Positions 11,592-35,739 of a stretch of 64,000 nucleotides of DNA are shown in pieces (positions within the stretch are counted from its first letter, which is position 1; every line of letters begins with the position of its first letter). This DNA comes from Asterias rubens (lineage: Eukaryota): positions 5,952,001 through 6,016,000 of the forward strand of contig NC_047068.1 in the NCBI RefSeq assembly GCF_902459465.1, written 5' to 3'. The notes below the pieces were generated by a model. It was given only the letters and a program-made list of their open reading frames with translations, ran no database searches and was not told where the DNA came from. A program made the position numbers and the translations under genes.

Positions 11592-13483
11592 TTAGCCTAA
11601 CCATGCGTTGACGGGGCAGTTTTTTCTGGGGTTCTTTGCCCGAACCACGTTGTATTGACAGTTATCTTCATCGAAGATTGCCACGCACTTCTTCGTGTCG
11701 TACTCAGCAGGATAAGGAATGCTGTAAGGATATAAGAAGGAGAAACAAAGTTCAGAGGCGGAAGGAGAGAGGGGGGCTAGGCTCTTCGCACGTGACGTCA
11801 CCCTTTAACTTTCTCTACTGCTTTTTCATTTTGGAAATAGAAAAGCAACCTGTACTATCGCGCATTGTTCATGTATTTGGTGGATGCGTATAGTAGGCCC
11901 AAGGAGAAAGTTACAATAATCATACAAAACATGATGCAGAGGTACGCGCAAAAAAAGACCATTCGAACGTGACGTCACCATTTTCTCTACCGCTATTTAA
12001 TTTTGGAATTATAAAGATAACCCATATTACTATTATAGCGAATTGTTTGTGATGTCGGTGCGTAACATATGCGCAAGTAGAAAGTTACAGTAATCATAAA
12101 AAAATGATGTAACTACGCACAACGTGGACAGAACACAAGCTTGCAAAAGTGTTGTGGTGTAAACTGATATCGGGTTTCATGCTCATTTATAAAAACCAAA
12201 CGAAGCCAAATAATGTGAAACCGTACAACGTAGCCTACTCTGTGTGCCACTGTGACTAGACCGTGCAAGTCTATTCATTATTTTTTTTCCCCAAAAGGAA
12301 GGTGTAAAATTTGTCAGTATTTGGCTTCTTCGTCTTGTGAAATGGAAGTCAAGATTTCACCTCACGATTACACTCTGCGACAATGTAGACTACTCATAAT
12401 GCATCCGATAATATGCTGGCAATATTTCTACCTCCACATTAACAGTCACTCATAGGCCTTGTTAGTCAACGGCGCAGGTGGATAAAACTAAACCTAATGG
12501 CCTGCCCATTAAGTTAATCGCAGTTCTAGGCGAATGGAGGACTACTTCTCATTTCTTTCCCGATCTGATAAGAGAAGTAAGCAGCCACTGAAATATGATA
12601 GTATTTCAATCTTACTTGTAACAGCAGCCAACAGCATCACCTTTGTCGTTACATGTGCACTCGAGACATTTTGTTGAAGTGCCGGGAATGTCATCGTAAT
12701 ATGGACCCGGTTCGCAAGACGCTATTAAGAAAAATAACAACAAGATGAATTATTACAACTTTCTGGATGATGCTTTTGTTCTCTTTTATTTTAATGGTTT
12801 TGTTTTGCACGATGAAACAGTTCGAAATAATCGCCGAAAGACCACTCGGCACTTTTTACATCTGAGTATGTTTTGTTTCTTTTGATGGGGCTGTTATTAT
12901 GAACTGAGACCGAAGGTGGTCCATTAAGTAATTTTGACCATCACCATAAATCGCTTCTCTCCGCACAGGAGTGATAATAATTGACTTTCTACAGGGGGTA
13001 TCCAGGGATCTTTGGTCAAAGTTATACAGGATTTACGAGGCGTAACGTTATGCTCTGGTGAATCTCACTTCAATCCAACTTCTTGTTTCAAATTCAAGAT
13101 TTTGTAATTTGTCATAATTTGTTGATTTCGCATGAATGGACATTGTTTGGACGGCCTTTATTACTGTTATCCATCATCTCATTATTTATAACGCCAGTCT
13201 GAATAAAAAACTCGTAATAAATGAAGCAAACACCGTTTCGCTGGGTTGGATCATGACGGCCTGTGCGTATTCTGGCGCTTGTTGCTCGTGCGCATGCGTT
13301 GTTGTAATCCATTTGCCCTTTTGTGACAACACCCAGCCACCCATCACACTTGCCTGCAATAAGTTGAAGATTTATATTTTGTAAATGACGTGGTCATGAC
13401 TTACTTCTCATTTGGAAACAGGAGGCATTTGCACCTGCCACCAGGAGCAGAGAACAGGCCAGGATGATGTAAAAACTCGCCAT
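11592..13483 (-). CDS. Beta-microseminoprotein (MSMB/PSP94)-like secreted protein, paralog A, 104 aa; exons 13483-13405, 12721-12616, 11721-11592
   Basis: MASFYIILACSLLLVAGANA-SCFQMRTSCEPGPYYDDIPGTSTKCLECTCNDKGDAVGCCYNIPYPAEYDTKKCVAIFDEDNCQYNVVRAKNPRKNCPVNAWLG. Signal peptide plus 10 Cys with CxxCxC, CC, then x13-C-x8-C-x13-C spacing as in MSMB. GT-AG introns, phases 1 and 2. Confidence 0.88.
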
Positions 13484-13640
13484 AGGAACTGTAAAAAAAA
13501 AAAAAGAGGGATTTAATTCTCTTTAATTCTCTTAATTTCGATGACCAAGTCCAAGTTTTCGCACTGTAATTGCATGCATTATGTTTGGATACGGATACAC
13601 CAAGTGAGAATACCGGTCTTTGACATTACCAAAGGTTGCC

Positions 13641-13825
13641 AGCAAACGATTTCACGAAATGCTAGTATTATATCTCCAGTTAGGACGAGTTACTTACTCG
13701 TCCTAACTTTGAATGGGTTCAATGCGTCCTTACTTGTATGTACATGTATATACGGAACTGAACTCGTCATCAGTCCTAAGATTAATAATCCTAAAGTTAG
13801 GAAGAGTTTGGTGAAATCGACGGCA
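13641..13825. mobile_element. MITE family D (second copy 35928-36155)
   Basis: TIR (G)CCGATTTCACGAAA / GTGAAATCGACGGC; shared AATGCGTCCT and ATACGGAACT blocks. Confidence 0.7.
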
Positions 13826-14299
13826 CGGTGCCTTTAAAGTTACCCCCATCCATAACACGTAATAAGTGATTGTCCAGACAACTTGTCACGTCTCATTTTA
13901 CTTTATAGTAGTGCCACATTCTTAGTGTTGAATGTTAAAGGGGAACTGGTGAATGAAGAGTGAAACAAAATTTAAAGATTTTCCCAACAAAAACAGATGT
14001 TTGTTAAGAGGGGGGAGTCGGCTGTTGATCCACGCCCACGGCGAAGTGATGCCGAGTGAACGAGCCGAAACAGGGCGATGTGAATGCACCGAGACGGTAG
14101 AGGGCCCACGGACAGAAGAATGTCATACGGTCACCTGTGTGGCCCAAGATTATCGCGGGCTTTCTTAATAGTCAATGAAGTTTTCACCCAATGGCCGCAT
14201 ATAGTGTGACGAAAAGGAGGCTGCGTGGAGAATTGGGCTGATACCTTATTGGTTCGTTTCGTTGGCTTACACGTGTTTTAATAAGCAACACGAACATGA

Positions 14300-14480
14300 A
14301 TAACGACAGCGACACCGACGACGACAACGGCTGCTTGCAGTTGAAACTGCAACAGCAACATCAACATCAACATCAGCAACAACAACAGCAACAACGACAA
14401 CGGTGACAAGGACAACGACATCGAAAACGGCAACGACATTGACAACGACAACGAGAAAACAACCACAGCGACGAACACAA
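14300..14480. repeat. Compound (CAA/CGA/CAT)n microsatellite
   Basis: Direct reading. Confidence 0.85.
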
Positions 14481-14578
14481 CAATAAACCCTTCTCTCTCC
14501 CAAAACATATTAAGTTAACACAGTACAGTTTATAAGAAACAAGGTTCAACCCAGACGAAAGGGAAAGTGATATCCTAC

Positions 14579-14698
14579 CTTTTGTTTTGTTGACCAGCGA
14601 CAATTAGTTGAGAGAAGGAGAAGTCTTGAGATAGTATCTACTCAGAATGAAACCTGGAACCGTCTGCCCAATCCTAGCCGTCAAAATTCATTTTTATA
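14579..14698 (-). promoter_or_regulatory. Candidate TATA and non-coding first exon of MSMB-like paralog A
   Basis: TATAAAAA (14698-14691) and an AAG|GTAGGA donor at 14579. Coding exon 1 begins with an acceptor only 5 nt before the ATG, so a UTR exon is required. Confidence 0.4.
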
Positions 14699-16459
14699 CC
14701 GCTATGCAACCATCCGAGCAAGCCGCAACACCCGCAGTACAGAAATACCTAATGAGAGAGAGAGAGTGATATACAAAAATAAAGAGCCCAACTTAATTAA
14801 TTCCAAGACGGCTGGCAATATTATTTCATAATGCGGAAAGCTTAACCACTCGTCACGGGAGGGCGGTCTTGCGTCACCGAAGCGTCAGAGAAGCACAGTA
14901 CATTTCTTCACATCTGCTAATGCTGTAATGAGGTCCAGATTTGTTATTAATAACGGATGATGATAAAACATTCTCTTGCAACACATCCATCATTAAAGGT
15001 GTATTACATCAATGGTTTTTAAAAGATTTACCACCATGCGTTTTGTTTTATGGTTGTTATTCAAAAATTGTTTTGGTTAAATTGGCCATCACTGGCCAGA
15101 GACCGAAACAGTTTCGGCCGCCAAAACGCACCATGTGTTTACAGTATCCTCCGAAGTCTTCCATTATGGACAGGGTTGAAAGGCAAAGATTACCTTTCGT
15201 TTTGGGAACCGTTCGATTGCTGTAATCATATGTAAATGTCAGTATATACAACAAAATAAAACATGCGAACATTTTCATTTCAAATGGTCGCTCTTTAAGA
15301 TATCGCCGAAAATCCGGAGCAAATAATGTACACATAGAAGAATAATCCCTAGGACTACACAATCTTTTTACATGACCACATTATTTCGTAATATACCTTA
15401 TCGCAAATACCAATGCGCAAGCGCAGACTGTTGAATGAGGTGCATTGTGGGATAGATATGGATAAAATTTGGATACCAGCTAGACCACAATGCATCTAAT
15501 TCCAAGCTTTACGCGCGCGCCCCAGTATTTGCGAAAAGGTCTCAATGTTTCTCAAACTTGCTGTATACTGTCGGAAGCTGATGTAGGCTTCTAGCCAAAT
15601 TGTTTTAAGTGTCAATTGTTGAAAGAGCCTATTACGAACTGCACATTCCCTTTGACCAGGGCAACAATGTAAAGCGCATTGAGACAGTTATTGTGAAATG
15701 CATAATTTAAAAACTGATTACCTTTAACTGCAGCGCTACATTTTTTAATTGTCTCGTATGAAGGATGATAAACAGTGACTGTTTTTGATAGGAGAAAATG
15801 AGATTGAAGACAGCTTTCCCACCGGCACAGGAGCAGATGGGAGATCAAAATAAATCTATCATTTTAATTTCCACTGGTTGGTAAAGATAAAGTAGAATAG
15901 TGGTGACTAATGGATGTACGAAATAAAAAACGAATCTATCGTAAGAGTGAGGATATACTTTGGTGCATTTATATCCAATACAAAATTAAACGGTTTGAAG
16001 TAACACCAAGGAGTTGACACTTTGCATACGTGGTGAGATTCTGTTTGCGTTAACACGAAGGCCTAAACATGGGTAGAATTTGAAATGTTGATATGGTGGA
16101 GAAGGGTTTGCAGTTACACCTTGTGCTATATGATTTGAAACTTTGCATGGTGGAGATACAATCTTGCACTCTTTGCGGTAACACCACGTACATAGGCAGA
16201 ATTTGAAACTTGTTATGATGGTGATACAATCTAATTTGCAGCAGCACAGCACCATGTACAGCATGAGTAGCATTTGAAACAATGCATGTGGGGATCAACT
16301 ATAGTACGGTTTCAAAACGATTTTGGAGCGGACAATAGTATGGTGCCGTTTATGTTTATGAGCATTAGTACTTTTATTGCCATACATTCACAGGGAACAA
16401 GACAAGTATGGCCACAGTATATGTGCAAAGTATTTTATTGTCAGATGAATGCTGAATGC

Positions 16460-16840
16460 AGACAGTGGACAGACACTATATTGGTAATTACTCAAAATAA
16501 TTATTAGCATAAAACCTTACTTGGTAACGAGTAATGGGGAGAGGTTGATAGTATACAACGAAATAACGAAGTAACGTAGTTTTCGAGAAAGAAATAATTT
16601 CCCCCGAATTTGATTTTGAGACCGTAGAGTTAGATTTGGAGGTCCCGCAATCAAGCACTTGAAAGTGCACAACTTAGAGTGGCAAGGGTGTTTTTTTTTC
16701 TTTCATTATTATCTCGCAACTTCGACGACCAATAATTGAGCTCAAATTTTGACAGGTTTGTTATTGTATGCATATGTTGAGATACACCAAGTGAGAATAC
16801 TGGCCTTTGACAATTACCAATAGAATAGTGTCTAGTGTCT
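16460..16840. mobile_element. Family A MITE
   Basis: Same TIR and internal blocks (ACTCAAAATAATTATTAGCATAAAACC; GAGCTCAA; CACCAAGTGAGA). Confidence 0.8.
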
Positions 16841-17215
16841 TTAAGAAACGACGATATAAACAAATCAATCATTCGAAGTAAGTGTAAAGCCGTTAACCGC
16901 ATTCAAGCATGAAATTATATTTCAAGATTTCTCAAAATGTGTATTCCATGTTTTATTTCTGTTATTTAGACAAATTGGGATATTTTAATGTTGTGTCATA
17001 GATTGCTAGTTGTATGCAAGTCGCCAGACACACAAGGCCCGAAGGCCACTTCAAGGTGTGGGCCACAAATCAACAATTTTTCTAAGGGGCATTGCCACCT
17101 ATTCCTCGGGCTGAAACAGGGTTACCCCTTTGCAGTCCATCTGATGTAGGCTTGGGTATCAGAAAGCATTACCTCCCCGACACTTACGAAGCAATCGTAG
17201 AAGTGTCTTGCTTAA

Positions 17216-17590
17216 AGACACTGGACACTAATGGTAATGTCAAAGACAGTCTTCTCACTTGGTGTATCTCAACATATGCATAAAATAACAACCTGTGAAA
17301 ATTTGAGCTCAATCGGTCATCGAAGTTGCGAGATAATATTGAAAGAAAAAACACCCTTGTCACACGAAGTTGTGTGCTTTCAGATAGTTGATTTCGAGAC
17401 CTCAAATTCTTAACTTGAGGTTTCGAAATCAAATTCGTGGAAAATTACTTCTTTCTCGAAAGCTACGCCACTTCAGAGGGAGCCGTTTCTCACAATGTTT
17501 TATACTATCAACCTCTCCACATGACTCATTACCAAGTAAGGTTGTATGCTAATAATTATTTTGAGTAATTACCAATAGTGTCCACTGCCT
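17216..17590. mobile_element. Family A MITE (opposite orientation to the 16460 copy)
   Basis: TTAA-flanked; TIRs at both ends. Confidence 0.8.
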
Positions 17591-18375
17591 TTTAAGGACA
17601 CAAGCGCACGACCGGGACTCGAACCCACACTCTGCTGACCAGAAACACAAAAAGAAAATAATTATCCAAACCACATCAGACAATATGTAGCCTTCTCAAA
17701 AATGGTTTATTTTAAAGTGCTTCATCAAGAAAGGTGTTACGGTCATTGTTGAGGCATGTACACGTTGACCCTCGTTGACCCTCGTTGACCCTCGTTGACC
17801 CTATACATTTTAATGATGGGTGTTGGTGTGCTTTATTGAAATAAAAATACCTGTTGTTGTATATTTTAATGACTTTAACAAATTATATGGTGTTTTTTTG
17901 GTAAGTGACGAATTATCATGCAGATGTTTAAGGTAGCCTTCATGCAGCCGTGAACTGAATACGAACTTCGTGGGTGTTGTTCTCCTGCCAATCGTGGTGA
18001 GATTGGGACTGATTTAGTGGGCGTGTGACCGCCGGAGCTTTACCCCCGCTTCATGTGACACCAGGCTTGAAGGTTATGCAAGATTTATATGAGATGTACC
18101 CACTTTTTTGTCACATGTATAACCTTAAACATTTTTAGATTGTGTGTGTGGGGGGGGGGGGGCATGTCTACTATTGATGACCGAGGACTTTAACAAAAGG
18201 GATCCGGGAAAAAGTCACACCGGGGACAGTCCTCGGTAGATTTTGTGTACAAAACCAATGGGGGCGTCTGAAAAATAAATTATGTCCAAACACTGGGAGA
18301 ACAAAGAGAAGTCCTCGGTCTGCACCATAAACATGCCTGTGTGTGTGTGTGTGTTTGAATGCTTCACAATTTTAA

Positions 18376-18716
18376 AGGAACTGAACACTATTGGTAGTTA
18401 CTCAAAATAATTTAGCATAAAACTTACTTGGTATTTTGGTGACGAGCAATGGAGAGCTGTTGATATTATACAACATTGTGAGTAAAAAAACGTAGTTATT
18501 TGTGAAAGAGGTAATTTCTCACAAAAGCCTTTTATTATTCATATGAAAGCACACACATGCAAAGTAATGCAACAAGGGTGTTTTTCTATCCTTATTCTCT
18601 TGCAAACTCGATGATCAATTGAGCCCAAATTTTCACTGGATTGTTATTGTGCAAATGTTGAGATACACCAAGTGAGAATGGTCTTTGACAATATTACAAA
18701 ACAATGTCCATTGCCT
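18376..18716. mobile_element. Family A MITE
   Basis: TTAA|AGG...CCT|TTAA; shared internal blocks. Confidence 0.75.
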
Positions 18717-18739
18717 TTAACTTTATGTTTTAATCGAGA

Positions 18740-19330
18740 CCCGCTGCTTCGTAATCCGCACCCTGCCTTGAATTATATCAAGTTGTAATTAGAATTAAAT
18801 TTCTGAATAATATTGCAAAATGTATCCGTAATTGGTAAGTAGCCGTAAGTGTATTTGCGTAGTATTTGCGTGTGGCCGTGACCAGCCTTCTGCCGGCCTG
18901 ATTGCATCGCTGCATTGGCTCCCTGTTAAAAAACGTATCAACTTCAAAATTTTCACTCATGTTTACAAAATCCTCCACACCCAATCTCCATCATATCTGG
19001 TTGAACTTGTTCATTCCCAAAACTCCAATACTGCTGATGAATACAGGCAACGACTCCGCTCATCAGCTGATCAGACCCGGCTTTCCGTTCCTAGAACTAG
19101 ACGGAAAGCTGGGGATAGCTCATTCTCCATAGCTGCCCCTCGCCTATGGAATGAGCTCCCCGCGGGTCTGAGAGAGGCGATCTCGTTGCCTGTATTCAAA
19201 AGCCTCCTCAAGACATTTCTTTTTCCCCACCCATCCTAGTTTGTTTGTTTTTCTTTTGTTTTGTTGTCATAGTCTCATGTAAAGCGCTCTGTTCTCCGTA
19301 GAGCGCTATATAAATGTTTCATATTATTAT
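18740..19330 (+). mobile_element. L2/CR1-group LINE, 5'-truncated 3' end
   Basis: LHWLPVKKRINFKI...YL...RLRS...LSVPRTRRKAGDSSFSIAAPRLWNELP...FKSLLKTFLF is the classic L2-clade ORF2 C-terminus. 3' UTR has a hairpin (19283-19307) and a TAT-type tail. Confidence 0.9.
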
Positions 19331-19492
19331 TAAGTGATCCAGGTGAACTAGTAGTTATATAGATTACGATTGAAATGCGATCGTGGCCTTCATACTTACC
19401 TTTGTTACTGTGAGCTTCTAAAGGGACAGGTACAATATGATTATGTTCGTCCCCTATGAATAACATTTCATTTTAAATTTTCCTTCCGAATG

Positions 19493-19632
19493 GGAGACTT
19501 TCTGGGACGATAGAGGGCAGCAGACTTACCGGGTAAATCCATTGTTCTCAGAATTATGCGCATGTTCAGAACTACGTAAACAATGGAAATTTACCCGGTA
19601 TGTCTGCTGCCGCCTAGCGTTGGAAAGTCTCC
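19493..19632. mobile_element. Small palindromic MITE (copy 58601-58742; partial ~32905-32990)
   Basis: GGAGACTTTC...GAAAGTCTCC TIR; internal TGCGCATGTTCAGAACTACGTAA shared. Confidence 0.75.
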
Positions 19633-20885
19633 TATTGTTATTTCATTCCTCTCCGAATCTTTTTGTTTTTCCTTCGAAAATATGATGAGAAAGCGTATTG
19701 AAAGGCATGGATGCTTCGTTTATGAGAGGGCAGGGGCACCAAGGCAGTTTCTCCGTAATAAAGGGCACCCTATGGGGAAATTGTAATTTTATACTGTAGC
19801 ATTTCAAGGGCACCAAGGCACGGATCCGGTGGCATGGAGTGTGCCCTTTGCCAAGTCAGGTGAGTCGGTGCGGGCGCTGTTGGTGAGTTGGCCGCGCTGT
19901 GCGTGAAATGAAAACGAGAAACGTCTTGCACCAAAGACTACCGCGATCTAAGACTTGAAACTAGTCTATGTGTACATGTACATGAAGATGGGCACTGTTC
20001 TTTCGCTGGTGTCGCAAACGGTACGCTGTTTCCATGCAAGAAACAAATATGCTAATGTGCTGTACATCTACATGTATGTAGGGATGTACGTGTATTATAC
20101 ATGTATGTTCCCACGTTGTTTTATTGTTGTACCAACTGAAACGGTTTCATGTTTGAAACGAACGTAGGCCCTACTCGAAATTATGAATGTTTTTTTGTGG
20201 TTCGAGTAATGATTTCAATAATATGTGATAATTACCAAGCGATAGAAGCTCATTTTGGGAGCCCAATCAAGCAGTTTTGCATGGAATATTTGCCAAGTGC
20301 CTCAGTCGTGCGGCATACATTACTGCATGAACAAAGAACCTCAGACCATGGACTCGAGGTAGAAAAACCATGCCCATATAAAGCAAACGGAGTGCTTTCG
20401 CAATGCACTGTGTGCAGCATGCATTATTTGCATGTAAAAAGAACCCCTCATAAAAAAGCCAAAGGAGTGAATGCCCATCGATCGAAGGTCATTTTCTCTG
20501 AACATTCTAACAACCATCAACTGTGAAGTTGGGGCTTTTGGAGGTCTAGCGCGGTTGTTGAAAATTTTCATGGTTAAAGTACTGCCCTTTCAGCCAAAGA
20601 GCAAGGAAACTCGACTGATAACACGTAGTATAGGCAATATTATTGCCTATGCATTTACAGTTCAAATTTTACTAACCATGGATGGATGAAGAACTTGTAA
20701 AAAGGGCAACACGCATTTTTATGAAAAGGGACAGGTACGCCAGGTAAAAAACTAGCTGGGAATCACTCAAAAGATAAAGGTTAGGTAGGTTAATATATTA
20801 AAGCGATAATTTACAAGCAAGTATTTATACATCAAATTTATTGTTATCAGACAGTAAAACTTCATCTCTTTTTAGAATATTTGGT

Positions 20886-20901: not shown

Positions 20902-20932
20902 GGGGGTGTTGTGTGATGCTTAGAACCACAAT

Positions 20933-21550
<618 letters not shown>

Positions 21551-24444: not shown

Positions 24445-26248
24445 TTATTCCTTATAACCAGTGATAACGCACGGCGCCGGGTCATCTTTGTTCTTTTTCT
24501 TGAGTTTAAACTCACAAGCTTCAGTGAAGCTGTAGTCCTTTTCACATTTGCTCTCGTCAAAAATGGGATCTCTTGGAGTTCTGAAACGAGATTTAAAACA
24601 TTTATGAAATATTTCTTAGTATTACAAAATAATTGTTTCTGACACTCTGTCTTCAGTTTATTTGTGAAGTTAATTTAACTAATCTTATTTATCTCATATC
24701 TTGCAGAGTCTGTGGTGAAACAAGAACTACACTCAAGAGGCGTTTCTACGGCCACAGATCTACAGTCAAGACCCAAAAGCTAGATACACCTGTAGGTCAT
24801 CACTTCAATCTTCCTAATCACTCCATTTCTGACATGATCTTACAGGGCATAGAGGCACTAGGCAACCACAGAGAGACTGTGCGTTTGAGTAGGGAGAAAC
24901 TCTGGATTAGACGCCTCCAGACCATTCAACCCCATGGTCTGAACATCCAAGAAGGAAACGACTAATAAACCTTTTGTTTTGCCGTCTCCTTTTTCCCCAT
25001 AGCCTTTTAGCCTGAGCCTCATTCACTAATAAATTACTGTTTACCCAACCTCACCACCCTTGATGTTGTCCTTTGTGTTTCCATCTTCTTGCTTGTGGTC
25101 AAGCCAGCCCTTCCCTTCACCCCCCCCCTTTTGTCCCCCTATTCATTGTTTACCCCCTGCTGTTTTTTATGTATGCTGTCTAACCCCATTCATGTATTTC
25201 CACTTCACTGCTTTTGTTTCAATTAGTTACCTGTTCATGTTTGTTGTGTTGTCATTTAGCCTTCGAGAAAGACTCTGCTAGGTTCGAAACGTCAGGCCAT
25301 TAACTTTTTTTTTTGCATTTATACTCTCGGTCCATTTGGTTGGTAAGTTGTTTGCAACAGCTAATTCTATTTTCTCAAGTTAATTTAAGCATGGAGGAAT
25401 AAATGTTTACACTATAACTGTAATGGTGAGATGTGATGCACCTTTGGGGCCAACATACGTTTTCGTTACAGGTTAATGCGGCTGATGTGGTAACCTTCAC
25501 ACGTTTATGTTAACTTGCTTACGGAGAGTAAAGAAGTCTCTTGACAAACCCAAACAATCTGTTTCGTGGTAGTAGAAGAATTCTACCTGTCAAGTTTTTA
25601 TATACCGCAAACCAACATATTTTGATACCTCACAATGCAATGCCCCAAACCCCATACAAGTAAGCTCTTATATTAACACATCATAAAGGCCTATTGTGTT
25701 GATAACAATCCATGTTGAATTTCAAATCAATTTGGAGACACTCACTCCGTACAGCAGTCCAATAAACAGGTAGTAGGCCCGTTAACAGTGCATGTACAGT
25801 TGTTGCATTTGGTAATCGGCTGGGCGTTGAGGGAGCCCCCAGTCACTTTGCCTGATTCGTCACGCTGAACAGACTCTGTGTCCACTGTATAGGGGGAAGT
25901 GATCAATAAGGAAAGCGAATTAAATGAAATTTAAAGAAATCGAATCTAATCAAATCAAAACGAATCAAACCAAATCAAGTTCAAATCAAATCAATTTAAA
26001 TCGAATAAAATCGAATCGTATCGAATCAAAACGAATCAAACCAAATTTCAAATCAGGTCAAGTAGAATACAACCGAATGGAATAAATTTGAATCGAATCT
26101 AATCAAATCGAAACGAATAGAACCAAATCCGATCAAATAAAATGGTTTCGAGGTTCGAGTACAAACCTTGCATCGAGTTGAAGCAATGCCTCTTAGCTTC
26201 TAACACTGCGAGCAGAGAGAACATGATAAGAAGGGAAAGTTTTCCCAT
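24445..26248 (-). CDS. MSMB-like secreted protein, paralog B, 118 aa; exons 26248-26167, 25884-25746, 24580-24445
   Basis: MGKLSLLIMFSLLAVLEAKRHCFNSMQVDTESVQRDESGKVTGGSLNAQPITKCNNCTCTVNGPTTCLLDCCTETPRDPIFDESKCEKDYSFTEACEFKLKKKNKDDPAPCVITGYKE. Same intron positions and phases (1,2) as paralog A; 10 Cys; GT-AG sites. Confidence 0.85.
24660..25390 (+). mobile_element. Penelope-like retroelement 3' fragment (GIY-YIG endonuclease remnant + terminal region), in intron 2 of MSMB-like B
   Basis: NLIYLISCRVC-GETRTTLKRRFYGHRSTV...PVGHHFNLPNHSISDM...REKLWIRRLQTIQPHGLN is a typical PLE GIY-YIG C-terminus with an internal deletion (QYV missing). Followed by a pyrimidine-rich UTR and a hammerhead-like motif. 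Confidence 0.88.
25920..26140. repeat. Degenerate (AATCG/AAATC)n pentanucleotide array, intron 1 of MSMB-like B
   Basis: Direct reading. Confidence 0.85.
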
Positions 26249-26879: not shown

Positions 26880-27211
26880 AGGCAGTGGACACTATTGGTA
26901 ACTACTCAAAATAATTGTTAGCATAAAAACTTACTTGGAAATGAGGCATGGAGAGCTGATAGTACATGTATATATAACATTGTGAGAAACGGCTCCCTAC
27001 GAACTTACGTTGTTTTCGAGAAAGGAGTAATTTGAATTCGAGACCTCAGTTGAGGTATCGAATTCAAGGCATCTGATGTTTTTCTTCCATTGTTATCTCG
27101 CAACTTCGACGACCAATTGAGTAAAAATTTTCACAGATTTGTTATATGTCGGGATACATCAAGTGATAATACTGTTTGTTTTTGTACAATTACCAAAGGT
27201 GTCCAGTGCCT
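26880..27211. mobile_element. Family A MITE (half copy in opposite orientation at 26610-26791)
   Basis: TTAA|AGGCAGTGGACAC...GTGTCCAGTGCCT|TTAA. Confidence 0.8.
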
Positions 27212-27755
27212 TTAAACACACATTGAACATTCCTTTGCTGTGTACACTTATAAGGAGAATCTCATTCTAAAGTAAATACATCTGTATGTCCATCTTGGTC
27301 CATATAGTGCTTCAAGCACGTATCATCCTTATCACTAGTTTCACAGCATCTATACCAAAAAACATTTACACGAAAAGAGTGTTTGACACCCTTAAAATGC
27401 GCCCACACACCCAGATTAACAGGTCTGTTGCTACCGCTCTCTGCAGCCTGTTAAGAGCACGGAGTGAAGTCTCCACGTTTCAACCACTGTGCTCTGCCTG
27501 TCTTCATCAAAGCACACAGCTTAAAGTAGTGGTATTCAACTCACCATTTAAAAAACAACCTCTTTGTCCAAAGAACAGTAAATAGTTTTCTCAGATTTCA
27601 AGCAGTTTCATTTAGCCTATTCCGCCATAAACCATTACACTGTTGTATTGTTTAGAAATCGTTCCAGACCAAAACAAATTGTGTCAATCATTCAGTTGAC
27701 ACACACAAGTTAGTTTATATTTAAAAAAAATGATAACAAAATATCTAAATTTCAC

Positions 27756-27845
27756 TTACCAATTTTACAAAAATGCTGACGACTGCTGAATAACTGGTGC
27801 GGACTATTTCTGTTCGTGAATGGTCAAGTGATGCTATTTATGAAC
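27756..27845 (-). promoter_or_regulatory. Candidate TATA-like element and non-coding first exon of MSMB-like paralog B
   Basis: CATAAATA about 30 nt upstream of CCATTC and a TTG|GTAAGT donor. Paralog B's coding exon starts just after an acceptor. Confidence 0.35.
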
Positions 27846-28339
27846 AATAAAGATCTGATGGTGCTAATTATAGCTAACAATCAACCGATATGCAAATTGG
27901 TTATTAGAACGTGAATCACGTGACTCAATAAGTGTCAGTTCAATACGACTATTGTATCAATTTGCTTTTGATGTCATTCTTATCTAAGCACAGAAAATCT
28001 ACACTCACTAGAAAAAGGTTACCAGCCAATGCCGTCTGGTTTGTATTATTGGTGCAGCTGGGTTCTAAAGTGTGTCGGATAAACCATGGTGGTTAACACG
28101 TGACAGGACAGCATTAACCTTTTTGATATTTTTATGGTTGACACTGTTGAGTTGTCTGACCGGACGAGTTATCTGACCCGTCGAGTTTTCAAAGGACGAG
28201 TTGACTGAACTCCCTTGAGACGGTGGTTGGACCATGGAGGTAGACCTCCATGACCTCCAGTAGGATCGTGGGGTAGAAAGGCGAAGAGAGCGTTCTGTAA
28301 TGCGTTCTGCACCAAGAGATAAGATGAATAGGAGAGTCT

Positions 28340-28620
28340 TCTATGATGCTAATAAGTGATCTTTATTTATGCTGCCCGCGTCTTTAGGCTATTCATCAAT
28401 AAAACAAGGAGTTATAAGAGGGAGTTATTTCAAATATTTGATATCACCACTAGAAATCACAACCAACTTACCCTTAGAATCCCTTACTCTAGAACCAACG
28501 CCTTTCATAAGTCATACTTCCCCCAATACTGCAAAAGGTGGAATTCACTCCCCTACTTAAAACCAGCATCACTAGCCCCACTAAGTTTCGGCGTACACTC
28601 ATAGGTACGCATAAATCGAC
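28340..28620 (+). mobile_element. Decayed non-LTR retrotransposon ORF2 C-terminal remnant
   Basis: TRNHNQLTLRIPYSRTNAFHKSYFPQYCKRWNSLP resembles the LINE C-terminal motif (RTxxFxxSFFP...WNSLP). Confidence 0.65.
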
Positions 28621-30829
28621 GAGGAGTTCCTCCCTCCTGACCTAAACCTCATTGAGTGTTATTTCCAAAAGGAGCCGATCAATCAACTTATCAAGATCAA
28701 GATCAAGTAGGCAGTCTTTCGTGATCTTTTGTCATATGGAAATATGAAAACGAAAAATAACGATTACGAACGAGGGGCCCTTCCTCGTATACACATTAAA
28801 GTGTTTATTTGTTTCAAAACTTATATTGTTTAAAAATTGTCTTTCTTACGAAAATAGCTCCTGATGGCTTGCGCTTGTATCCGAATAAGTGAGTGCTGTT
28901 TGGGGAGAATTCATTATTTGTGTCAACAGAGGGCACTCGTTGGATTTTAGTGCAAGAGCTGGTGTCCCAGGAAATTCTGTTCCACATGTTCGGACCATAC
29001 GGTCCCCATATTATGGAAAATTAACATGGGCTGGAAGAGGATGCTTCAAAAGAGGGCGCCATCAGAAGAAGTTTGTTCATAGTTTGCCATATGGGGACAA
29101 AATATCCGGGTACAAAACCTCCTGGGACAAAATCTCATATCACACCGGTGGTGGGTGCTTACCAGAATGCAACAGAGTTTCTCAAATTTGGTCAACCCAT
29201 CGTTAATATTTTGCGTCAACATCAGTAAAACTTCACTGCAATTTAAAAAAGGTTTGCCATGCACAACCTGATGTAATTAAATCTAGAAAACCATGACAGG
29301 TTTAAAGATAGTTTTCGATGCTTTAAAAAAACAAATCCAGAGCTATAAACTTTCTTAAAAGGACACCCAAACCGCAAATTCTCACAATGCTTTTTACTAT
29401 CAACAGCTCTCCATTACTCGTTACCAAGTAAGTTTTTATACAATTTTTTGAGTAGTAATACTAATAGTGTCTAGTGCCTTTAACGTGTACGTACACAATA
29501 AGTCACGTGTACGTACACGATAAGGGACGTGTACGTACATGACAAGAGAGAGTTTTTTTTTATCCCCATGGTGGCAATACGCTTCAAAAAGTCACCCCGA
29601 AAATTGAAGCACAGAAGAAGAGGCTTGCAGAGACGCCCCTATAATCTATCTATGGGACACGGAGCTGTCTGAAAAACTTCAAACCATCTGAATTAAATAA
29701 TTATTCATTGCTGTTTGTCAAACTATTGATTCTCGATGTGTAAGCATTGTTGATATCATGACATTGGAATGGCTTAGTGGTGCTATTATTTTAAGCCTGT
29801 TGATAAATCCTAATATCAGGTGAGGGCTGTTGACAAACACAAAATATAGATTTTATAATTAAAAAAATCCTCAAACAACACAACTGTGTGTCTGCATGCA
29901 TTTATCAGACAGATCAATGGCAGATGGTTTAGAGGACATATTAAAATTTGCCATAGAGAAACAAAATAATTTATTGACCATAATAAAAGGGATTGTTAGT
30001 GTTGGTTTTATGCATCCGGCTTCAAAGCAATAACGTGATTGGATTTGCACTCACAAGGTTGTGGGTTCGTATCCGGCCAATCTATAACTGCTGATTTCAC
30101 CATTAGTACTCAAAACATCGTGTCTAATTACTGAATCACTATTTCTTGATTTTGTGCAATCACAGACGTTGGCCAATGTTTGTATGAGAGAGAGATTTGC
30201 TGTGCCAGCTTTGCGTTTACATCCCCTCCATGGAGTTGTGTCGAGTTCCTTTGTTGAAAAAACCCCACCCCGACAAACATCTAACCAGCACGAAAACGAG
30301 TCTGAGGTTGAGCTTAATTTTAAACAGCTACCTGAGCGGAATGGTTTCAACAGAAATGGTATTTTTACTTGTTTATAATGCACTTGTTCACCATTTTAAT
30401 GTAATTTTGATATGTGTACACTTCTGAACTTTTCGTAATTATCGATTAAAAAATCAGGCCCCTACCTAAAGGTTTTTTGAAAAACTAAAAACACTTCTGC
30501 CGTTGAGAGCGGGCGTCAAAGGACAATGCCGCTGACGTCATTTGTGAGAGTTTGCTTTGTTATACATCCACGCTGCAACAAAGCGGCTATATCTACTTAT
30601 GACGTTTTGAGAGTGATTACGTAACGGGGCTTTTCGCAAATCTCGCAAAAAAGCTCTGGACAAGGGCATACAAAATGATTGTTTTTTTTACACAATTGAA
30701 ACCTATTTATAATCATATGACTCGATTTCCTTATTCATCGAAAACATTTGAAGTGGAATTCAGCAAAGTTCACGACTTGACATTTTCGTTCAAGCAGGTC
30801 TTTAAGATTTACAAAAACATGTTAATGGG

Positions 30830-31192
30830 AGTGGACACTATTAGTAATTACTTAAAATAGTTATTATCATAAAACCTTTCTTGGTAACGAGCAATGGGGA
30901 GAGGTTGATAGTATTAAACATTGTGAGAAACGGCTCCCTCTGAAGTGACGTACTTTTCGAGGAAGAAGTAATTTTGCACGAATTAGATTTCGAGACCTCA
31001 GATTTAGAACTTGAGGTCTCGAAATCAAGCATCTTAAAGCACACCACTTCGTGTGAGAAGTGTGTGTTTTTTCCGCATTATTATCTCGCAACTTCGACGA
31101 CCGATTGAGCTCAAATTTTCACAGGTTTGTTATTTTATATACACCAACTGTGAAGGTTAGTCTTTGACAATTACCAAAAGTGTTCTCTGTCT
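30830..31192. mobile_element. Family A MITE
   Basis: Internal blocks and TIRs; shares its right TTAA with the adjacent family B element. Confidence 0.8.
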
Positions 31193-31196
31193 TTAA

Positions 31197-31579
31197 AGGA
31201 ACACGTTGCCTTGGATCGGTCGAGTTGGTCTTTGAAAAGCGTGTTGTGACCGTTTGTTATAAAATGCATATGGTTAGAAAGATGATTTAAAAGTAGTATA
31301 CAATGATCTACACAAATATGCCTCGAAATTGCGTGGTTTTCTTTTTACCTCGTCCAAGAACACGGTCGGCCACTTATGGGAGTCAAAATTTTGACTCCCA
31401 TAAATGGCCGACCGTGATAGTTCGCGACGTAAAAAGAAAACCGTGCAATTTTGAGTGATACTTGTGTGGATCATTATATTATACTTTTAAAACATCTTTC
31501 TAACCGTATACATTTCATAACAAACGGTTTCAAACGCTTTTTATAGATCAACTCGTCCGATCCAAGGCAACGTGTTCCT
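31197..31579. mobile_element. Kolobok-like TTAA MITE, family B (foldback, 383 bp)
   Basis: TTAA|AGGAACACGTTGCCTTGGATCGG...CCGATCCAAGGCAACGTGTTCCT|TTAA; near-palindromic throughout, with a central ~28-bp-stem hairpin (~31341-31396). Fragments at ~21720 and 47424. Confidence 0.85.
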
Positions 31580-33563
31580 TTAAGCTAAAATTCGTGTTCG
31601 ACAATAGTCGTCACAGACTAAAAATTTGTCACCAAAAGTGACCTGAGGTTTCGACCCAAGCACAGTCTTTTTCAAAGACTCTGTTGCATACGTTACATTT
31701 AAAATAATACATGACAAACAGGCCTACAGTGGATAAACAGATGTTGAAAAATTGATTCACCTCAAAAAACTTTTCAATCCGTTTTACATTGAATTCACGG
31801 CCTTGATATCGTCGCTTTCAAATAATCGCTAAATATTTTTGGGAGAACTAATAAATCGAAATACACGACACTACGGTGCATTATGATGTAGGCATAACAT
31901 AATAGTAACGTTATTATATATCTGGTAAAGCACAAATTAATTACTAATGACCTTTATCATGACGCAGCCATCTTGAATTTATCTCGTTGATATCAATGTT
32001 ACCAAACTGAGGCTGGAGAACAATGATAGTCTGGTTCCCTTTTGTAAAATGATTACCAGCATTCATTGTTGTTAATCGATACGAGGAACGTGACCAAGAT
32101 GCAGCACGATGTTAAAAGGTCTATAGCAGTATGACATCAGACATGAAGACACCTGGGTAGGTAAACACATTCAAACCGGGGACCTATAACAATAGAGGAC
32201 ATTATGTCCACACAGTTCGGGAAGGGTCCACGGTTTGAAAACGTGTACAAAACCAAAGGGAGATGCTGCAAAAAGTTAAGGTATAAACAAAAGAGGGACA
32301 ATTTATGGGAGGTCCATGGTGGCTGGCGTATACACACTTGTGTGCGTTGAGAAATGGATGAAGATATCTTGGTTTTGAGGGAAATTTTAATTTCGAAAAA
32401 CAATTGACATGCTTAGCGTCATTACGTGTGTCGATTTATTCATATCTAACCTCATAGAGATCCATACGGATGTACAGTTATCAACCAACTTTAACAATAT
32501 CAATTTCTTAATATATTTTTCAATGCCCTTTTAAGATAATGTTACATACTGTTACGTTAGTTGATTTATAAGTGTTTAAAGTTCTAAAGTTTCCGAAAGA
32601 AGTCGTCGTTTGAAGAAATTTCACGTATCAGGATGCCACAATCAAACCCGTCATAATTATATAATACACGGTGACGAAAGTAGGAACATTTTTCTTCAAA
32701 TCTGCTCTTTTAGCATCTTAGTTTTATTTTATTTTTATGGAGCGATTACTCAAATTTTGAGTTGTTCACCTAAAACTATTTTTAATAAACTTTTGTCGAG
32801 ATGCTTCAGAAATTATTCAATAACCAAAAGCAAGTCAATAGGAGATGTCTTTTGGTACGCCTGGTCCCAAAATTGGTCACCAAATTTAAAACTTATTGAT
32901 CTTGATTATGTGCGCATGTTCAGAACTACGTAAGCAATGGAACTTTAACTAGCAAGTCTGCTGTCACCTAGCGTTTTAAATTCTCCAATTGGAGTTTATC
33001 ATGGCGCGGCCATATCTTGCTTTTCTTCCCTTCAAAGCAACGCAACACAAATAAGGTAGTACGGGAATGTTATAGGCTGGCTCTTTTGTTAAATTAAGTG
33101 TCAAAACTCTCAATACCAAGGTAGTTACAGGGAATCAGACAAAGATGGTGCTAAAGATATTTTTCTACGACTCATACACGATACCAAATTTTTATAGTTA
33201 CTTTCAAAAGGTGTAAGATCCAACAAGAAGCAATATTTCAGTCTTGACACCAGAATGAATAACCAAACCAAATCATCATCCGGCTCGTCACCAAATTGTT
33301 AATAATCTGTTATTGTTTTTATTATTTATATTGTTATTTGTTTATTTCTGGTGTGAATCAAAAGATCAGTTAATAATAATCCAACGGGAAGAATAATAAA
33401 ATAAATGAAAATAAATAAATAAAATAAAATGTTCTGAAAGTGTTCAGTCAGTTATAATGTGTTGTGTCATATTATTTTAAACTAACGTAAAGCTAATCAC
33501 CCCTTTGACTATAATTATTTCCTTTTTCTTAAACAGATTTTCATTCGCACTTCTCCATTCTCA

Positions 33564-35739
33564 TCAAAATCCACCGTCGTCCTGTGCAGGGGGAGGGCAC
33601 TCAACTGCTGGGTCTTGTTTTGTAACAGTCTTCCAATTACAAACTCCTGTTGAGTCCCTTTTCACAATGTTTATGCATTCAGCAGCAATACTAATTGGGG
33701 CTGTATTCTCTGCCCTGCAAAAAAATGAAGAAAATATAATTCATTTTTAAAGGCCGATAGAATTCATTTTTAGGCCGTTAAAAGGCACTGAAAACAATTG
33801 GTAAATACTCAAATCAATTGTTAGCACGAAAACGTACTTTGTAACGAGCATTGGAGAGTTTTTGGTAGTAAAAACATTGCGAGAAACGGCTTCCTTTGAA
33901 GTAACGTAGTTTTGGAGAAAGATGTAATTTCTCACTTAAATATTTGATTCCATTATTTTCTCAACTTCGTCGACCAATTGGGTCAGCCAGTCAGCCAGCC
34001 TGCGACTCAGCCAGTAAGCAAGTAAGCCCAACCAGCCAGTCAGCCAACCAGCCAGTCAGCTAGCCTGCGAGTCAGCCAGTCAGCCAGCCTGCGTGTCAGC
34101 CAGTAAGCAGGTTAGCCAACCAGCCAGTCAGTCAGTTAGCCAGTTAGTCAGTTAGCCTGTCAGCCAGTCAGCCAATCAGCCAGCCTGCGACTCAGCCGGT
34201 AAGCAAGTAAGCCAACCAGCCAGTCAGCTAGCCTGCGAGTCAGCCAACCAGCTAGCCTGCGAGTCAGCCAACCAGCCAATCAGCTAGCCTGCGAGTCAGC
34301 CAACCAGCCAGTCAGCTAGCCTGCGAGTCAGCCAACCAGCCAGTCAGCTAGCCTGCGAGTCAGCCAATCAACCAGTCAGCCAGCCTGCGAGTCAGCCAGT
34401 AAGCAGATCAGCCAAACAGCCACTCAATCAGTTAGCCAGTCAGCCAGTCAGTCAGCCAGTCAGTCAGCCAGTCAGCAAGTCAGCCAGTCAGCCAATCAGC
34501 CAGTCAGCCAGTTAGCCAACCAGCCAGCTAGCCAGCCTGCGAGTCAACCAGCCAGTTAGCCAACCAGTCAGCCATGCCTGCCAGCCAGCCAGCCAGCCTA
34601 CGAATCAACCATTTAAAAGAAAACACTAAATCAAGTTTAAACACTAAACGCTAAATCAAGCTTACTCTATGCAGCAAGCCACGAACGACGTAAGACCACC
34701 CTTGACCAGCCTACATGAACATGTGTAACAGTCGCAGTCAGAGTGGCCATCAAAATCAGCTGGATCACACGCCTCGGCATCTGTAAAGTATTTTTTGTTG
34801 AGGGGGGGGGGGGGCACAACAAAAACAAGTCACACAACGTTTCCCCCATTGTGGAATAACAAACCCATAATAAACTATAAACAAAAAACCAAGTTTCAAA
34901 TTAAATTTAAGTTTTTTATTTTATTTTAATTTAATTCGGAATCTGCTTAGCACAGATAATGGTTACCAGATTAATTTGTATGACACCGACGCGTGACTGA
35001 TACCCAGGTATTCTATAATATTAATGAAGGAAACACAGTGATACTTCTGGGGGCGGTCAGGTTAGGGTATAAGGTGATCTTTCCTTGCATACCACTTTTG
35101 GGACCCCAGTATGAATCCTGTCGTGTGGAATAATTATGCGGATTGGGTTTCAAATTCCCGCCTGATCGCCCGGGTTATATTCACTGGAATAACTCTCTGG
35201 GATTTTTCCTCCGACTTTTAAAATTGAAATTCCATTCTTCGTTTCCTTGACTTATAGTGATTTAAAGTTCCTTCTCTGAGAGTCATTGGTTTCATTAAAC
35301 CAGAATTCATAACATTGCTTAATGACATCTTTGAATAATGTAATTTGAGGCACTGCACGAACAAGGCATCTGGTCTGTGGTATCTACAGGTACAGAACTG
35401 TCTTTCTATATTCTACTATGCGGAGTAGTTTTATCGGATATTGTTCGGGAGACTTCTCCATTCTAAAAAAAAAAAAAACTATCCTGCTTGAGTGTATTTG
35501 TCTACTTGCCGGGTAGATTTTTTGTTCTCATGAGAACTTTATCACTACTGCGGAGTAGATTTTCGAATGTCGGGAGACTTCTTAGTTCTTACATCTATGA
35601 AAAAAGGAGGAAAACGAATCTGTTTAATTCATAACTGCCTACCTTGTATCTCGTGGCAGCTTCCATCACACGGATGCTCCAATTGGCCAGCTACAACCAG
35701 AACCAGAGAACATAATACGACCAGACAGAGCCTTGCCAT
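33564..35739 (-). CDS. MSMB-like secreted protein, paralog C, 120 aa; exons 35739-35643, 34780-34666, 33714-33564
   Basis: MARLCLVVLCSLVLVVAGQLEHPCDGSCHEIQDAEACDPADFDGHSDCDCYTCSCRLVKGGLTSFVACCIEAENTAPISIAAECINIVKRDSTGVCNWKTVTKQDPAVECPPPAQDDGGF. Same exon phases (1,2); CxxCxC and CC motifs; V.K.DP..C ending; start context cag-ttcc(g/t)-ATGGC shared with paralog A. Confidence 0.85.
33985..34610. repeat. (CAGC/CAGT)n compound array with higher-order CAGCTAGCCTGCGAGT units, intron 2 of MSMB-like C
   Basis: Direct reading. Confidence 0.9.
35050..35320 (+). mobile_element. SINE-like repeat (family also at ~1840-1930 reverse and 62835-63025)
   Basis: Shared GGATTGGGTTT...GGAATAA..CTCTGGG(G)ATTT.CCTCC.AC...AAAA(C/T)TGAAA block; the 62835 copy ends in an (AAATG)n tail. 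Confidence 0.6.

Follow-up and report, generated by a model that had tools for sequence, protein, structure and literature searches.

A probable conserved tandem array of three beta-microseminoprotein (MSMB/PSP94) family genes in Asterias rubens, with an unannotated but transcribed member

Beta-microseminoprotein (MSMB/PSP94) genes have been described from vertebrates, molluscs, and echinoderms. Primate MSMB comprises exons of 35, 106, 106, and ~230 nt with the ATG forming the last three letters of exon 1 (PMC2746217), from which our own arithmetic derives vertebrate intron phases 1 and 2; the first exon of vertebrate MSMB genes is almost wholly non-coding (PMC2746217; PMC3268785). Independent tandem bursts in this family are on record for opossum, lizard, marmoset, and sea cucumber (PMC3268785; PMC2746217; PMC5638244). 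The sea cucumber Apostichopus japonicus carries 11 PSP94-like genes on one scaffold that are induced in gut regeneration (PMC5638244); the crown-of-thorns starfish has a testis-enriched beta-microseminoprotein-like gene (PMC9759900); and a passage of PMC9759900 citing other work describes a squid beta-MSP-like protein as affecting mating behavior. Because both the PSP94 family and its lineage-specific tandem clusters are already published for echinoderms (sea cucumber, crown-of-thorns), the array described here adds members to a known family, and knowledge of the family as a whole is unchanged by it. What is new is that one of its genes (g3) is expressed yet missing from the A. rubens annotation, and that two (g2 and g3) have diverged beyond what the standard family model recognizes.

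The window, the whole stretch of Asterias rubens DNA that was analyzed (64,000 nt), holds the genes g1, g2, and g3 on the minus strand of 11592-35739. In all likelihood, they are paralogous members of the MSMB/PSP94 family in a conserved tandem array. All three are conserved in the sister species A. amurensis, where their reading frames are intact, and dN/dS lies below 1. The gene models are as follows:

g1, minus strand, coding exons 13483-13405, 12721-12616, 11721-11592: product of 104 aa
13405..13483, minus: g1 coding exon 1, with ATG, putative signal peptide, and first cysteine; next intron phase 1
12616..12721, minus: g1 coding exon 2, 106 nt, with Cys, CxxCxC, and CC; next intron phase 2
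11592..11721, minus: g1 coding exon 3, with C-x8-C-x13-C tail and stop codon
g2, minus strand, coding exons 26248-26167, 25884-25746, 24580-24445: product of 118 aa
26167..26248, minus: g2 coding exon 1, with putative signal peptide and first cysteine; phase 1
25746..25884, minus: g2 coding exon 2, with CxxCxC, an extra Cys, and CC; phase 2
24445..24580, minus: g2 coding exon 3, with C-x9-C-x14-C tail and stop codon
g3, minus strand, coding exons 35739-35643, 34780-34666, 33714-33564: product of 120 aa
37025..37121, minus: g3 5' non-coding exon, 3' end exact at 37025, 5' end at least 37121
35643..35757, minus: g3 exon 2, with an 18-nt leader, ATG at 35739, putative signal peptide, and two cysteines; phase 1
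34666..34780, minus: g3 exon 3, with Cys, C-x-C-x2-C-x-C, and CC; phase 2
33564..33714, minus: g3 exon 4, coding part, with C-x11-C-x13-C tail and stop

All introns between coding exons are GT..AG, with phase 1 followed by phase 2 in each gene. The N-terminus of each protein is a hydrophobic run of 17-20 residues that is helical in the models and is a putative signal peptide, and each protein contains the pattern CxxCxC...CC plus C-x8-11-C-x13-14-C; pairwise protein identity among the three is only 23-29%. A first-pass annotation made from the sequence had proposed three same-strand genes of three coding exons with phases 1,2, and all nine exons lie on the minus strand exactly where it placed them, with cysteine spacings as it described. 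Its remark that a single exon appears in the open reading frame track is at odds with an ORF list cut at 40 aa, where several of the exons appear. A histone H3 gene interrupts the three-gene array. Three side ORFs (24633-24965 +, 41242-41985 -, and 18832-19239 +) gave no match in Pfam.

A PSP94 profile from which all Asterias sequences were excluded was run over the whole window. Among 2158 six-frame open stretches, the top three were the last exons of g1, g2, and g3 (g3 at rank 2, g2 at rank 3), followed at ranks 4-5 by the middle exons of g2 and g1. That the top hits are exactly the three last exons indicates an arrangement that is more than chance. The same scan of all 2158 stretches found no fourth copy in the window.

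The spliced product of g1 equals XP_033631163.1 (P0004) letter for letter, and NCBI already names it "beta-microseminoprotein J1-like". Full-length g1 scores 56.9 bits against Pfam PF05825 (PSP94; gathering threshold 22 bits). Its coding exon 3 alone scores 46.2 bits (E 6.9e-12) and was the only match in single-exon Pfam scans of all three genes. A word-index search with the last-exon frame returned the A. amurensis orthologue only, and g1 is 56% identical to Patiria miniata XP_038069527.1. Judged by its sequence, g1 is certainly a member of the MSMB/PSP94 family.

The other two genes lie further out. Full-length g2 (P0002, P0003) and g3 (P0005) had no match to Pfam PSP94 even at E up to 10; the only matches they had in Pfam were weak ones, to Pacifastin_I (g2, E 0.037) and CofB_pilin (g3, E 0.032). 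In a language-model search, the three clusters nearest to g2 were PSP94 (0.90, 185 shared features); for g3 the search was at noise level (best score 0.68), with PSP94 first at rank 12, and its nearest clusters, at 0.64-0.68, came variously from toxin, TIL, neuroparsin, and SVWC families. Direct comparison of g2 with g3 by hhalign was not significant (probability 1.3%). The absent PSP94 matches, the mixed neighbors of g3, and the failed g2-g3 comparison would all suit a different origin for g3 and, with lower probability, for g2: a small secreted Cys-rich protein of another kind (a single-domain VWC-like, pacifastin-like, or toxin-like knot) that reached MSMB spacing by convergence and has a true MSMB gene next to it by coincidence.

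We consider such convergence quite improbable. Strand, tandem position, coding-exon number, and intron phases are common to all three genes, and the last exons of g3 and g2 stand second and third in the window scan. Nine cysteine columns are invariant in a five-sequence alignment (A3), and the ten-cysteine order C, C, CxxCxC, CC, C, C, C is present in g1 and in A. amurensis g2. (Two MAFFT alignments of exon fragments on the g1 orthologue, A1 and A2, were set aside because they misplaced the last exons.) A search profile built from g1, g2, g3, and their orthologues retrieved 76 proteins, of which 72 were aligned and 68 of those carry PF05825; PSP94-family proteins among the matches come from all five echinoderm classes. 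With hhalign against a 65-protein PSP94 profile, the mature parts reached 95.6% (E 1e-8) for g2 and 91.5% (E 9e-7) for g3, whereas column-shuffled controls reached at most 5.5% probability; our own HMM of 65 PF05825-positive non-Asterias proteins gave 34.8 bits for g2, 39.1 for its A. amurensis orthologue, and 15.5 for g3, against 9.4 bits for the best of 2000 shuffled sequences; the members of the 65-protein profile came via a query that included g2 and g3, which could favor proteins resembling them.

The best PDB matches of the AlphaFold models of g2 and g3 (pLDDT 77.6 and 73.4) are PSP94-family chains only (3ix0, 2iz3, 1xhh, and 6rwc; for g3 also 6imf_B), which likewise speaks against an unrelated protein; these matches are weak (Foldseek E 0.03-0.8, TM 0.26-0.43, Z 3.0-4.4), and since PSP94 proteins dominated the AlphaFold input alignments, the likeness is partly circular. 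The PDB title of 6imf_B reads only "TOXIN/ANTITOXIN complex"; we regard the chain as a small serum protein of snakes in complex with a venom CRISP. The alignment-free Atlas model of g2 matches an MSMB cluster at TM 0.42-0.44, and that of g3 is poor (pLDDT 0.44). The models thus lend weak and partly circular support to membership.

Overall, profile-profile matches, gene structure, cysteine columns, and best PDB matches make it very probable that g2 and g3 are divergent PSP94 members. The first-pass annotation's central claim of tandem paralogous MSMB/PSP94-like genes therefore stands, for g1 through Pfam and for g2 and g3 through profiles, gene structure, and cysteines; the check it proposed against the Pfam PSP94 model succeeded for g1 and failed for g2 and g3. 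Its word "hidden" does not fit g1, which already bears a family name.

All three genes occur in A. amurensis in the same order and between the same neighbors. Every splice site is conserved there, and the coding sequences built in that genome translate exactly to P0001, P0003, and P0005. Between A. rubens and A. amurensis, dN/dS is 0.36 for g1, 0.31 for g2, and 0.50 for g3, values that rest on 7-23 substitutions per gene. The identity of only 23-29% among paralogues implies an old split, and assembly GCA_014845345.1 has a contig with a g2-like last exon at only 53% identity. A maximum-likelihood tree of 27 family members, half of whose forks lack support and in which long branches attract each other, joins g2 with the Acanthaster planci paralogue XP_022109913.1 (support 88/78, both on long branches), a pairing that we read as a weak hint.

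These observations bear on whether the array is a recent Asterias-specific expansion under positive selection or a set of old paralogues now under purifying selection. Speaking for a recent expansion are the very long stem branches of g2 and g3 in the tree (3.0 and 2.7 changes per column), a second coding exon of g2 that has diverged between the two Asterias species like its introns (89.9% vs 84-93% identity), and the precedent of tandem bursts published for the family (PMC3268785; PMC2746217; PMC5638244). The shared gene order in A. amurensis, the dN/dS of 0.31-0.50, the distant g2-like exon, the Acanthaster pairing, and the low identity among paralogues run counter to it, and we judge a recent expansion improbable. 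The earlier description of the cluster as "lineage-specific" is doubtful, given its presence in A. amurensis, the g2-like exon in GCA_014845345.1, and the weak Acanthaster grouping. "Rapidly diversifying" fits the long stem branches but not the dN/dS between the two Asterias species, which is not above 1.

The spliced product of g2 is identical, letter for letter, to XP_033629943.1, annotated only as "uncharacterized LOC117292123", and in several RNA runs a fraction of 0.1-0.35 of the words from this stretch is present. No exon differs more between A. rubens and A. amurensis than coding exon 2 of g2, which holds a moved cysteine. Whereas A. amurensis g2 keeps the full ten-cysteine order, A. 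rubens g2 has ten cysteines with one relocated: the cysteine aligned with the second conserved Cys is gone (R35 replaces it), and a new one (Cys66) is gained between CxxCxC and CC. It is conceivable, though we hold it rather unlikely, that g2 and g3 are starfish branches of the PSP94 superfamily that are old, evolve fast, and escape standard models, and that a g2 disulfide has been re-wired between sister species. Under such re-wiring, A. amurensis g2 would retain the ancestral cysteine of the N-terminal segment where A. rubens has Arg, and the new A. rubens Cys would sit 7 residues past the would-be partner Cys, by analogy with vertebrate pairing.

No gene is called at g3 in the A. rubens annotation, and the exact g3 protein is absent from the protein collection. 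Nevertheless, g3 is spliced and expressed. RNA contigs of runs X1, X3, and X4 contain both the joint 35757/37025 (GT..AG, minus) and the joint 34780/35643; the X1 contig reaches a word depth of 527, with depth zero in the intron. Mapping of RNA contigs covered 34600-38600, and the joint between exons 3 and 4 rests on the X1 contig: its tail, unaligned at 34665, maps uniquely to 33684-33713, the start of the next exon. The 3' UTR of exon 4 extends toward lower coordinates beyond 33564. The spliced-RNA check set out in the first-pass annotation was thereby borne out for g3, and its suspicion of under-annotation holds fully for g3, which has no A. rubens model, and half for g2, which is annotated but unnamed. 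Intron 3 of g3 contains a 617-nt tandem array. Upstream of the gene is a stretch with huge read depths, which we treated as a dispersed repeat; an Rfam search of 35700-38700 matched no family.

The missing gene call, together with a dN/dS (0.50) that is the highest of the three, could mean that g3 went unannotated as a copy in decay or without function. The frame of 120 codons is intact, however, and all 12 cysteines of the mature protein, the ten plus two extra near the N-terminus, are conserved in both species; the A. amurensis model has the same length (120 aa) and 93% identity. Both species have the same canonical splice sites, three runs contain correctly spliced RNA, and the 5' exon with its upstream stretch is 97% identical between species, more than the introns. 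Decay is extremely improbable, and with the conserved frame and the spliced RNA we rejected a pseudogene reading of g3.

Taking g2 and g3 as family members, each gene would yield a protein of ~85-100 residues once the signal peptide is removed, presumably resembling vertebrate MSMB, an all-beta fold of two domains (a Greek-key sheet at the N-terminus and a four-strand sheet at the C-terminus), and locked by five disulfides (six in g3). On this model, g1 would have retained recognizable sequence, and in g2 and g3 divergence would have left little besides the scaffold of cysteines, the exon-intron structure, and a handful of C-terminal residues. How the three proteins act we can only infer by analogy to solved complexes and to the literature on the family: they are most likely small extracellular binders, for example docking on CAP/CRISP-type partners, and/or may be antimicrobial or chemical-signal proteins, and each paralogue would have its own partner. 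The first-pass annotation had suggested a possible immune, mucus, or gamete role.

For annotation, the array means that the A. rubens gene set is without a well-expressed gene, g3, and that two "uncharacterized" starfish proteins can now be assigned to a family. Since the curated PSP94 model misses divergent echinoderm members, invertebrate family counts are probably too low, and the echinoderm family would be larger than annotated if g2 and g3 are old starfish branches. MSMB-type proteins have been linked to reproduction, defense, and chemical signaling in vertebrates and molluscs and, in echinoderms, to gut regeneration (sea cucumber) and testis-enriched secretion (crown-of-thorns starfish); an array conserved in two Asterias species supplies defined candidates for such roles in laboratory starfish. 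The relocated g2 cysteine offers a small natural experiment on disulfide plasticity. If the paralogues turned out to serve as external signals specific to a tissue or a sex, or as factors of regeneration in the manner of the sea cucumber cluster, they would form a tractable model of a cysteine scaffold that tolerates near-total sequence turnover.

Finally, the array can be set beside the known systems. Like vertebrate MSMB/PSP94 (PF05825; 3IX0, 2IZ3, 1XHH; chicken MSMB3, 6RWC), the starfish proteins are predicted to be secreted, with ~90-100 residues and ten cysteines in the same order. The coding-exon layout with the derived phases 1,2 is shared by g1, g2, and g3; the middle coding exon of g1 has the same length, 106 nt, as marmoset MSMB exon 3 (PMC2746217); a (nearly) non-coding first exon is seen in g3 from its RNA joints; and fast sequence change with tandem duplication is a habit of the family. 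Unlike the vertebrate proteins, g2 and g3 fall below the Pfam model that g1 passes, mature g3 has 12 cysteines, A. rubens g2 has a relocated cysteine, and the whole start codon falls within exon 2 in g3, 18 nt from its beginning, and presumably within exon 2 in g1 and g2.

Among echinoderms, comparable "beta-microseminoprotein-like" proteins are found in Patiria miniata (XP_038069527.1), Acanthaster planci (XP_022109913.1 and XP_022091409.1), Lytechinus, and crinoids, and Acanthaster likewise has at least two divergent paralogues; g2 and g3, in contrast, are without a named counterpart. The A. japonicus cluster is similarly an echinoderm tandem array of divergent PSP94-like genes recognized mainly by cysteine topology, but it has 11 genes where Asterias has three split by the histone H3 gene; one A. 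japonicus protein (P0063) was among our profile-search matches, on a long branch without resolution in the maximum-likelihood tree. Snake small serum proteins are PSP94-family inhibitors of venom CRISPs. The chain 6IMF_B shares only its fold family with the g3 model, at a weak match of Z 3.0. The snake proteins and squid beta-MSP offer parallels for the starfish genes, as cases of what divergent members of the family do: binding to a partner of the CAP/CRISP type, or signaling outside the body.

The window is eukaryotic, and three minus-strand beta-microseminoprotein-like (MSMB/PSP94) genes, named g1, g2 and g3 here, could be rebuilt from its raw sequence:

11721-11592, 12721-12616 and 13483-13405, minus strand, coding exons 3 to 1 of g1, product of 104 amino acids
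24580-24445, 25884-25746 and 26248-26167, minus strand, coding exons 3 to 1 of g2, product of 118 amino acids
33714-33564, 34780-34666 and 35739-35643, minus strand, coding exons 3 to 1 of g3, product of 120 amino acids

The rebuilt models agree exactly with the three genes and coordinates of the first-pass annotation, which run from the A of the g3 ATG at 35739 to 11592, where the g1 stop codon ends. All six introns are GT..AG with a pyrimidine run preceding each AG, and phases are 1 then 2 in every gene. A hydrophobic leader opens each product, and the cysteines after it are arranged as C, (C), CxxCxC, CC, C-x8-11-C-x13-14-C. Identity among the three proteins is 23-29%, and they are co-linear when aligned, with nine invariant cysteine columns. 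The window holds no fourth copy according to a profile of g1-g3, which matched none of the 2158 six-frame open stretches apart from the nine exons of these genes. An intronless histone H3 ORF of 136 amino acids (20933-21343, minus strand; Pfam Histone) lies between g1 and g2, and a histone H3 gene also separates their orthologues in A. amurensis.

By sequence, g1 certainly belongs to MSMB/PSP94. The proposed check against the Pfam model PSP94 (PF05825) succeeded for this gene (56.9 bits, cut-off 22; 46.2 bits for the last exon on its own) and failed for g2 and g3, neither of which matched even at E up to 10. More sensitive tests connect these two to the family. A profile of five Asterias proteins, searched exhaustively against 1.84 billion representatives, returned 76 proteins with E values no higher than 0.001; PF05825 is present in 68 of the 72 aligned matches, and the remaining four are the g2 and g3 proteins plus one g2-like fragment. 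Ten profile matches followed up by name include “beta-microseminoprotein-like” or unnamed proteins of starfish, sea urchins, crinoids, a brittle star and a sea cucumber. Another match, the 153-amino-acid library “protein” P0073, is g1 exon 1 continued into its own intron, a case where an ORF called from an assembly without splicing takes the place of a real gene.

An HMM built from 65 PSP94 proteins of that search, none from Asterias, scored g2 at 34.8 bits, its A. amurensis orthologue at 39.1, and the g3 pair at 15.5 and 15.2, with 9.4 bits for the best of 2000 composition-matched shuffles; all conserved cysteines were paired in the alignments. With signal peptides removed, hhalign comparison with the family alignment gave 95.6% (E 1e-8) for the two-species alignment of g2 and 91.5% (E 9e-7) for that of g3, and column-shuffled controls reached at most 5.5%. 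In a six-frame scan of the whole window, the non-Asterias profile gave the three last exons the top three ranks. An alignment-free protein-language-model search with g2 was topped by three PSP94 clusters (0.90, 0.90 and 0.89; 179-185 shared features); the same search with g3 gave noise level only.

AlphaFold2 models of g2 and g3 (pLDDT 77.6 and 73.4; the A. amurensis orthologue was used for g3) had only PSP94-family entries as top matches among 350,542 PDB chains: human PSP94 (3ix0, 2iz3), porcine 1xhh and chicken MSMB3 (6rwc). The g3 model additionally matched 6imf chain B; the entry, titled only “TOXIN/ANTITOXIN complex”, is taken here as a complex of a venom CRISP with a snake small serum protein. 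Since these matches are weak (Foldseek E 0.03-0.8, TM 0.26-0.43, VIA-align Z 3.0-4.4 over 71-83 aligned residues) and the AlphaFold2 input alignments were dominated by PSP94 proteins, the models are consistent with membership and are not independent proof of it. An alignment-free Atlas model of g2 gave TM 0.42-0.44 over 87 residues against an MSMB cluster.

Gene structure can be compared with that of vertebrates. Marmoset MSMB exons measure 35, 106, 106 and about 230 nt (PMC2746217), and the MSMB ATG is the final three letters of exon 1 (PMC3268785). By arithmetic, these values give vertebrate intron phases 1 and 2, the same as in g1-g3, and g1 has a middle coding exon of 106 nt too. Overall, the original interpretation of family and architecture is largely right.

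The description of the cluster as hidden and under-annotated holds only in part. Database matches and the A. rubens record show that g1 is not hidden, being XP_033631163.1, “beta-microseminoprotein J1-like [Asterias rubens]”; that g2 is annotated and merely unnamed, its product being letter for letter XP_033629943.1, “uncharacterized protein LOC117292123 [Asterias rubens]”; and that g3 is missing, with its exact product absent from a 15-billion-protein collection and the 10 kb on the upstream side of g2, where it lies, free of gene calls in LR699098.1 (assembly GCA_902459465.3). All three have orthologues in A. amurensis, where the gene order is C-type lectin gene, g3, g2, H3, g1, PLD-like gene.

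Asterias amurensis orthologues and substitutions between the two species (dN/dS by Nei-Gojobori)
g1: P0001, “beta-microseminoprotein J1-like”, 96% identity; dN/dS 0.36 from 3 synonymous and 4 non-synonymous changes
g2: P0003, “uncharacterized”, 90% identity; dN/dS 0.31 from 10.3 synonymous and 12.7 non-synonymous changes
g3: P0005, “uncharacterized”, 120 amino acids, 93% identity; dN/dS 0.50 from 6.5 synonymous and 11.5 non-synonymous changes

The A. amurensis gene upstream of g3 encodes a 419-amino-acid C-type lectin protein. In the window, a 247-amino-acid Ser/Thr/Val-rich ORF without a Pfam match (41242-41985, minus strand) lies upstream of g3 and, given that neighbor, may represent a mucin-like exon belonging to the orthologous lectin gene.

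The g3 gene is transcribed and spliced as predicted. Logan contigs of four RNA runs were aligned to 34600-38600, and those of three (X1, X3 and X4) carry the joint 34780/35643, the predicted first coding intron (GT..AG, minus strand), with a word depth of 527 for the X1 contig and zero in the intron. At 34665 the X1 contig has an unaligned tail whose sole mapping position is 33684-33713, where the predicted last exon begins; thus, both coding introns are confirmed. A second joint on the same X1, X3 and X4 contigs, 35757/37025, identifies a 5’ non-coding exon from 37025 to at least 37121 and puts the acceptor of that joint 18 nt ahead of the ATG. Identity to A. amurensis is 97% in this exon and in the sequence upstream of it, compared with 89-94% in the introns. 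For g2, 0.1-0.35 of the words of its 2.1-kb stretch are present in several RNA runs.

The g3 5’ exon also contains an out-of-frame upstream ATG (37113-37115, minus strand), which would open a frame of ~60 codons that overlaps the g3 start codon. It is ATA in A. amurensis and, being unconserved, probably has no regulatory role in the gene. Three stretches in and around the 5’ intron (35806-36207, 36878-37011 and 37950-38083) show word depths between 10^3 and 10^5 in each of the four runs and occur in dozens of variant contigs with many internal 70-150-nt skips, a pattern suggesting a transcribed dispersed repeat of very high abundance; they have no Rfam match. The last intron of g3 holds a 617-nt tandem array (33982-34598; ~77 copies of the 8-nt unit GTCAGCCA, 69% matches) that translates as a long false “LADWLTG” repeat.

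The A. amurensis coding sequences, rebuilt from fetched loci, keep all splice sites and give products identical to the database proteins. The dN/dS values suggest moderate constraint between the two species, on few changes, and among those few changes no gene shows a sign of dN/dS above 1. Changes in g2 are concentrated in the N-terminal half. A. amurensis g2 has Cys35, in the alignment column of conserved cysteine number two; A. rubens g2 has Arg35 (25782-25784) and an inserted Cys66 (25689-25691) between CxxCxC and CC. The total is ten cysteines in both species (one assembly per species), and a disulfide relocation is possible. Intron 2 of g2 (24581-25745) is 1165 nt in A. rubens versus 449 nt in A. 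amurensis; the extra ~700 nt hold a 110-amino-acid ORF (24633-24965, plus strand) with no Pfam match and are probably a mobile-element fragment inserted in A. rubens.

A g2-like last exon, only 53% identical, occurs on a contig of another assembly, GCA_014845345.1, and a tree of poor resolution groups g2 with an Acanthaster paralogue. Judged by these two observations and the 23-29% identity, the paralogues are old, not recent, and the earlier term lineage-specific was overstated.

In summary, g1-g3 are each expressed or annotated, encode small proteins with a leader and a conserved cysteine scaffold, and are intact in two species. From family knowledge, the products would be secreted, act outside the cell and fold as two disulfide-locked beta-sheet domains; likely modes are partner-protein binding, antimicrobial action or signalling. 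CAP/CRISP-type proteins of the vertebrate and snake examples offer an analogy for partners, and the paralogues may have diverged toward different ones. The gains here are an expressed gene without annotation (g3), two family assignments and the possible disulfide relocation.

Finally, MSMB has undergone independent tandem bursts in opossum (14 copies), tammar wallaby and lizard (PMC3268785), and marmoset carries multiple copies (PMC2746217). A squid family member affects mating behaviour (as cited in PMC9759900). Among echinoderms, a sea cucumber genome encodes 11 tandem PSP94-like genes, known by cysteine topology and induced in gut regeneration (PMC5638244), and beta-microseminoprotein is among the most highly testis-expressed secreted factors of the crown-of-thorns starfish (PMC9759900); an echinoderm cluster of divergent tandem MSMB-like genes is therefore already known in kind.
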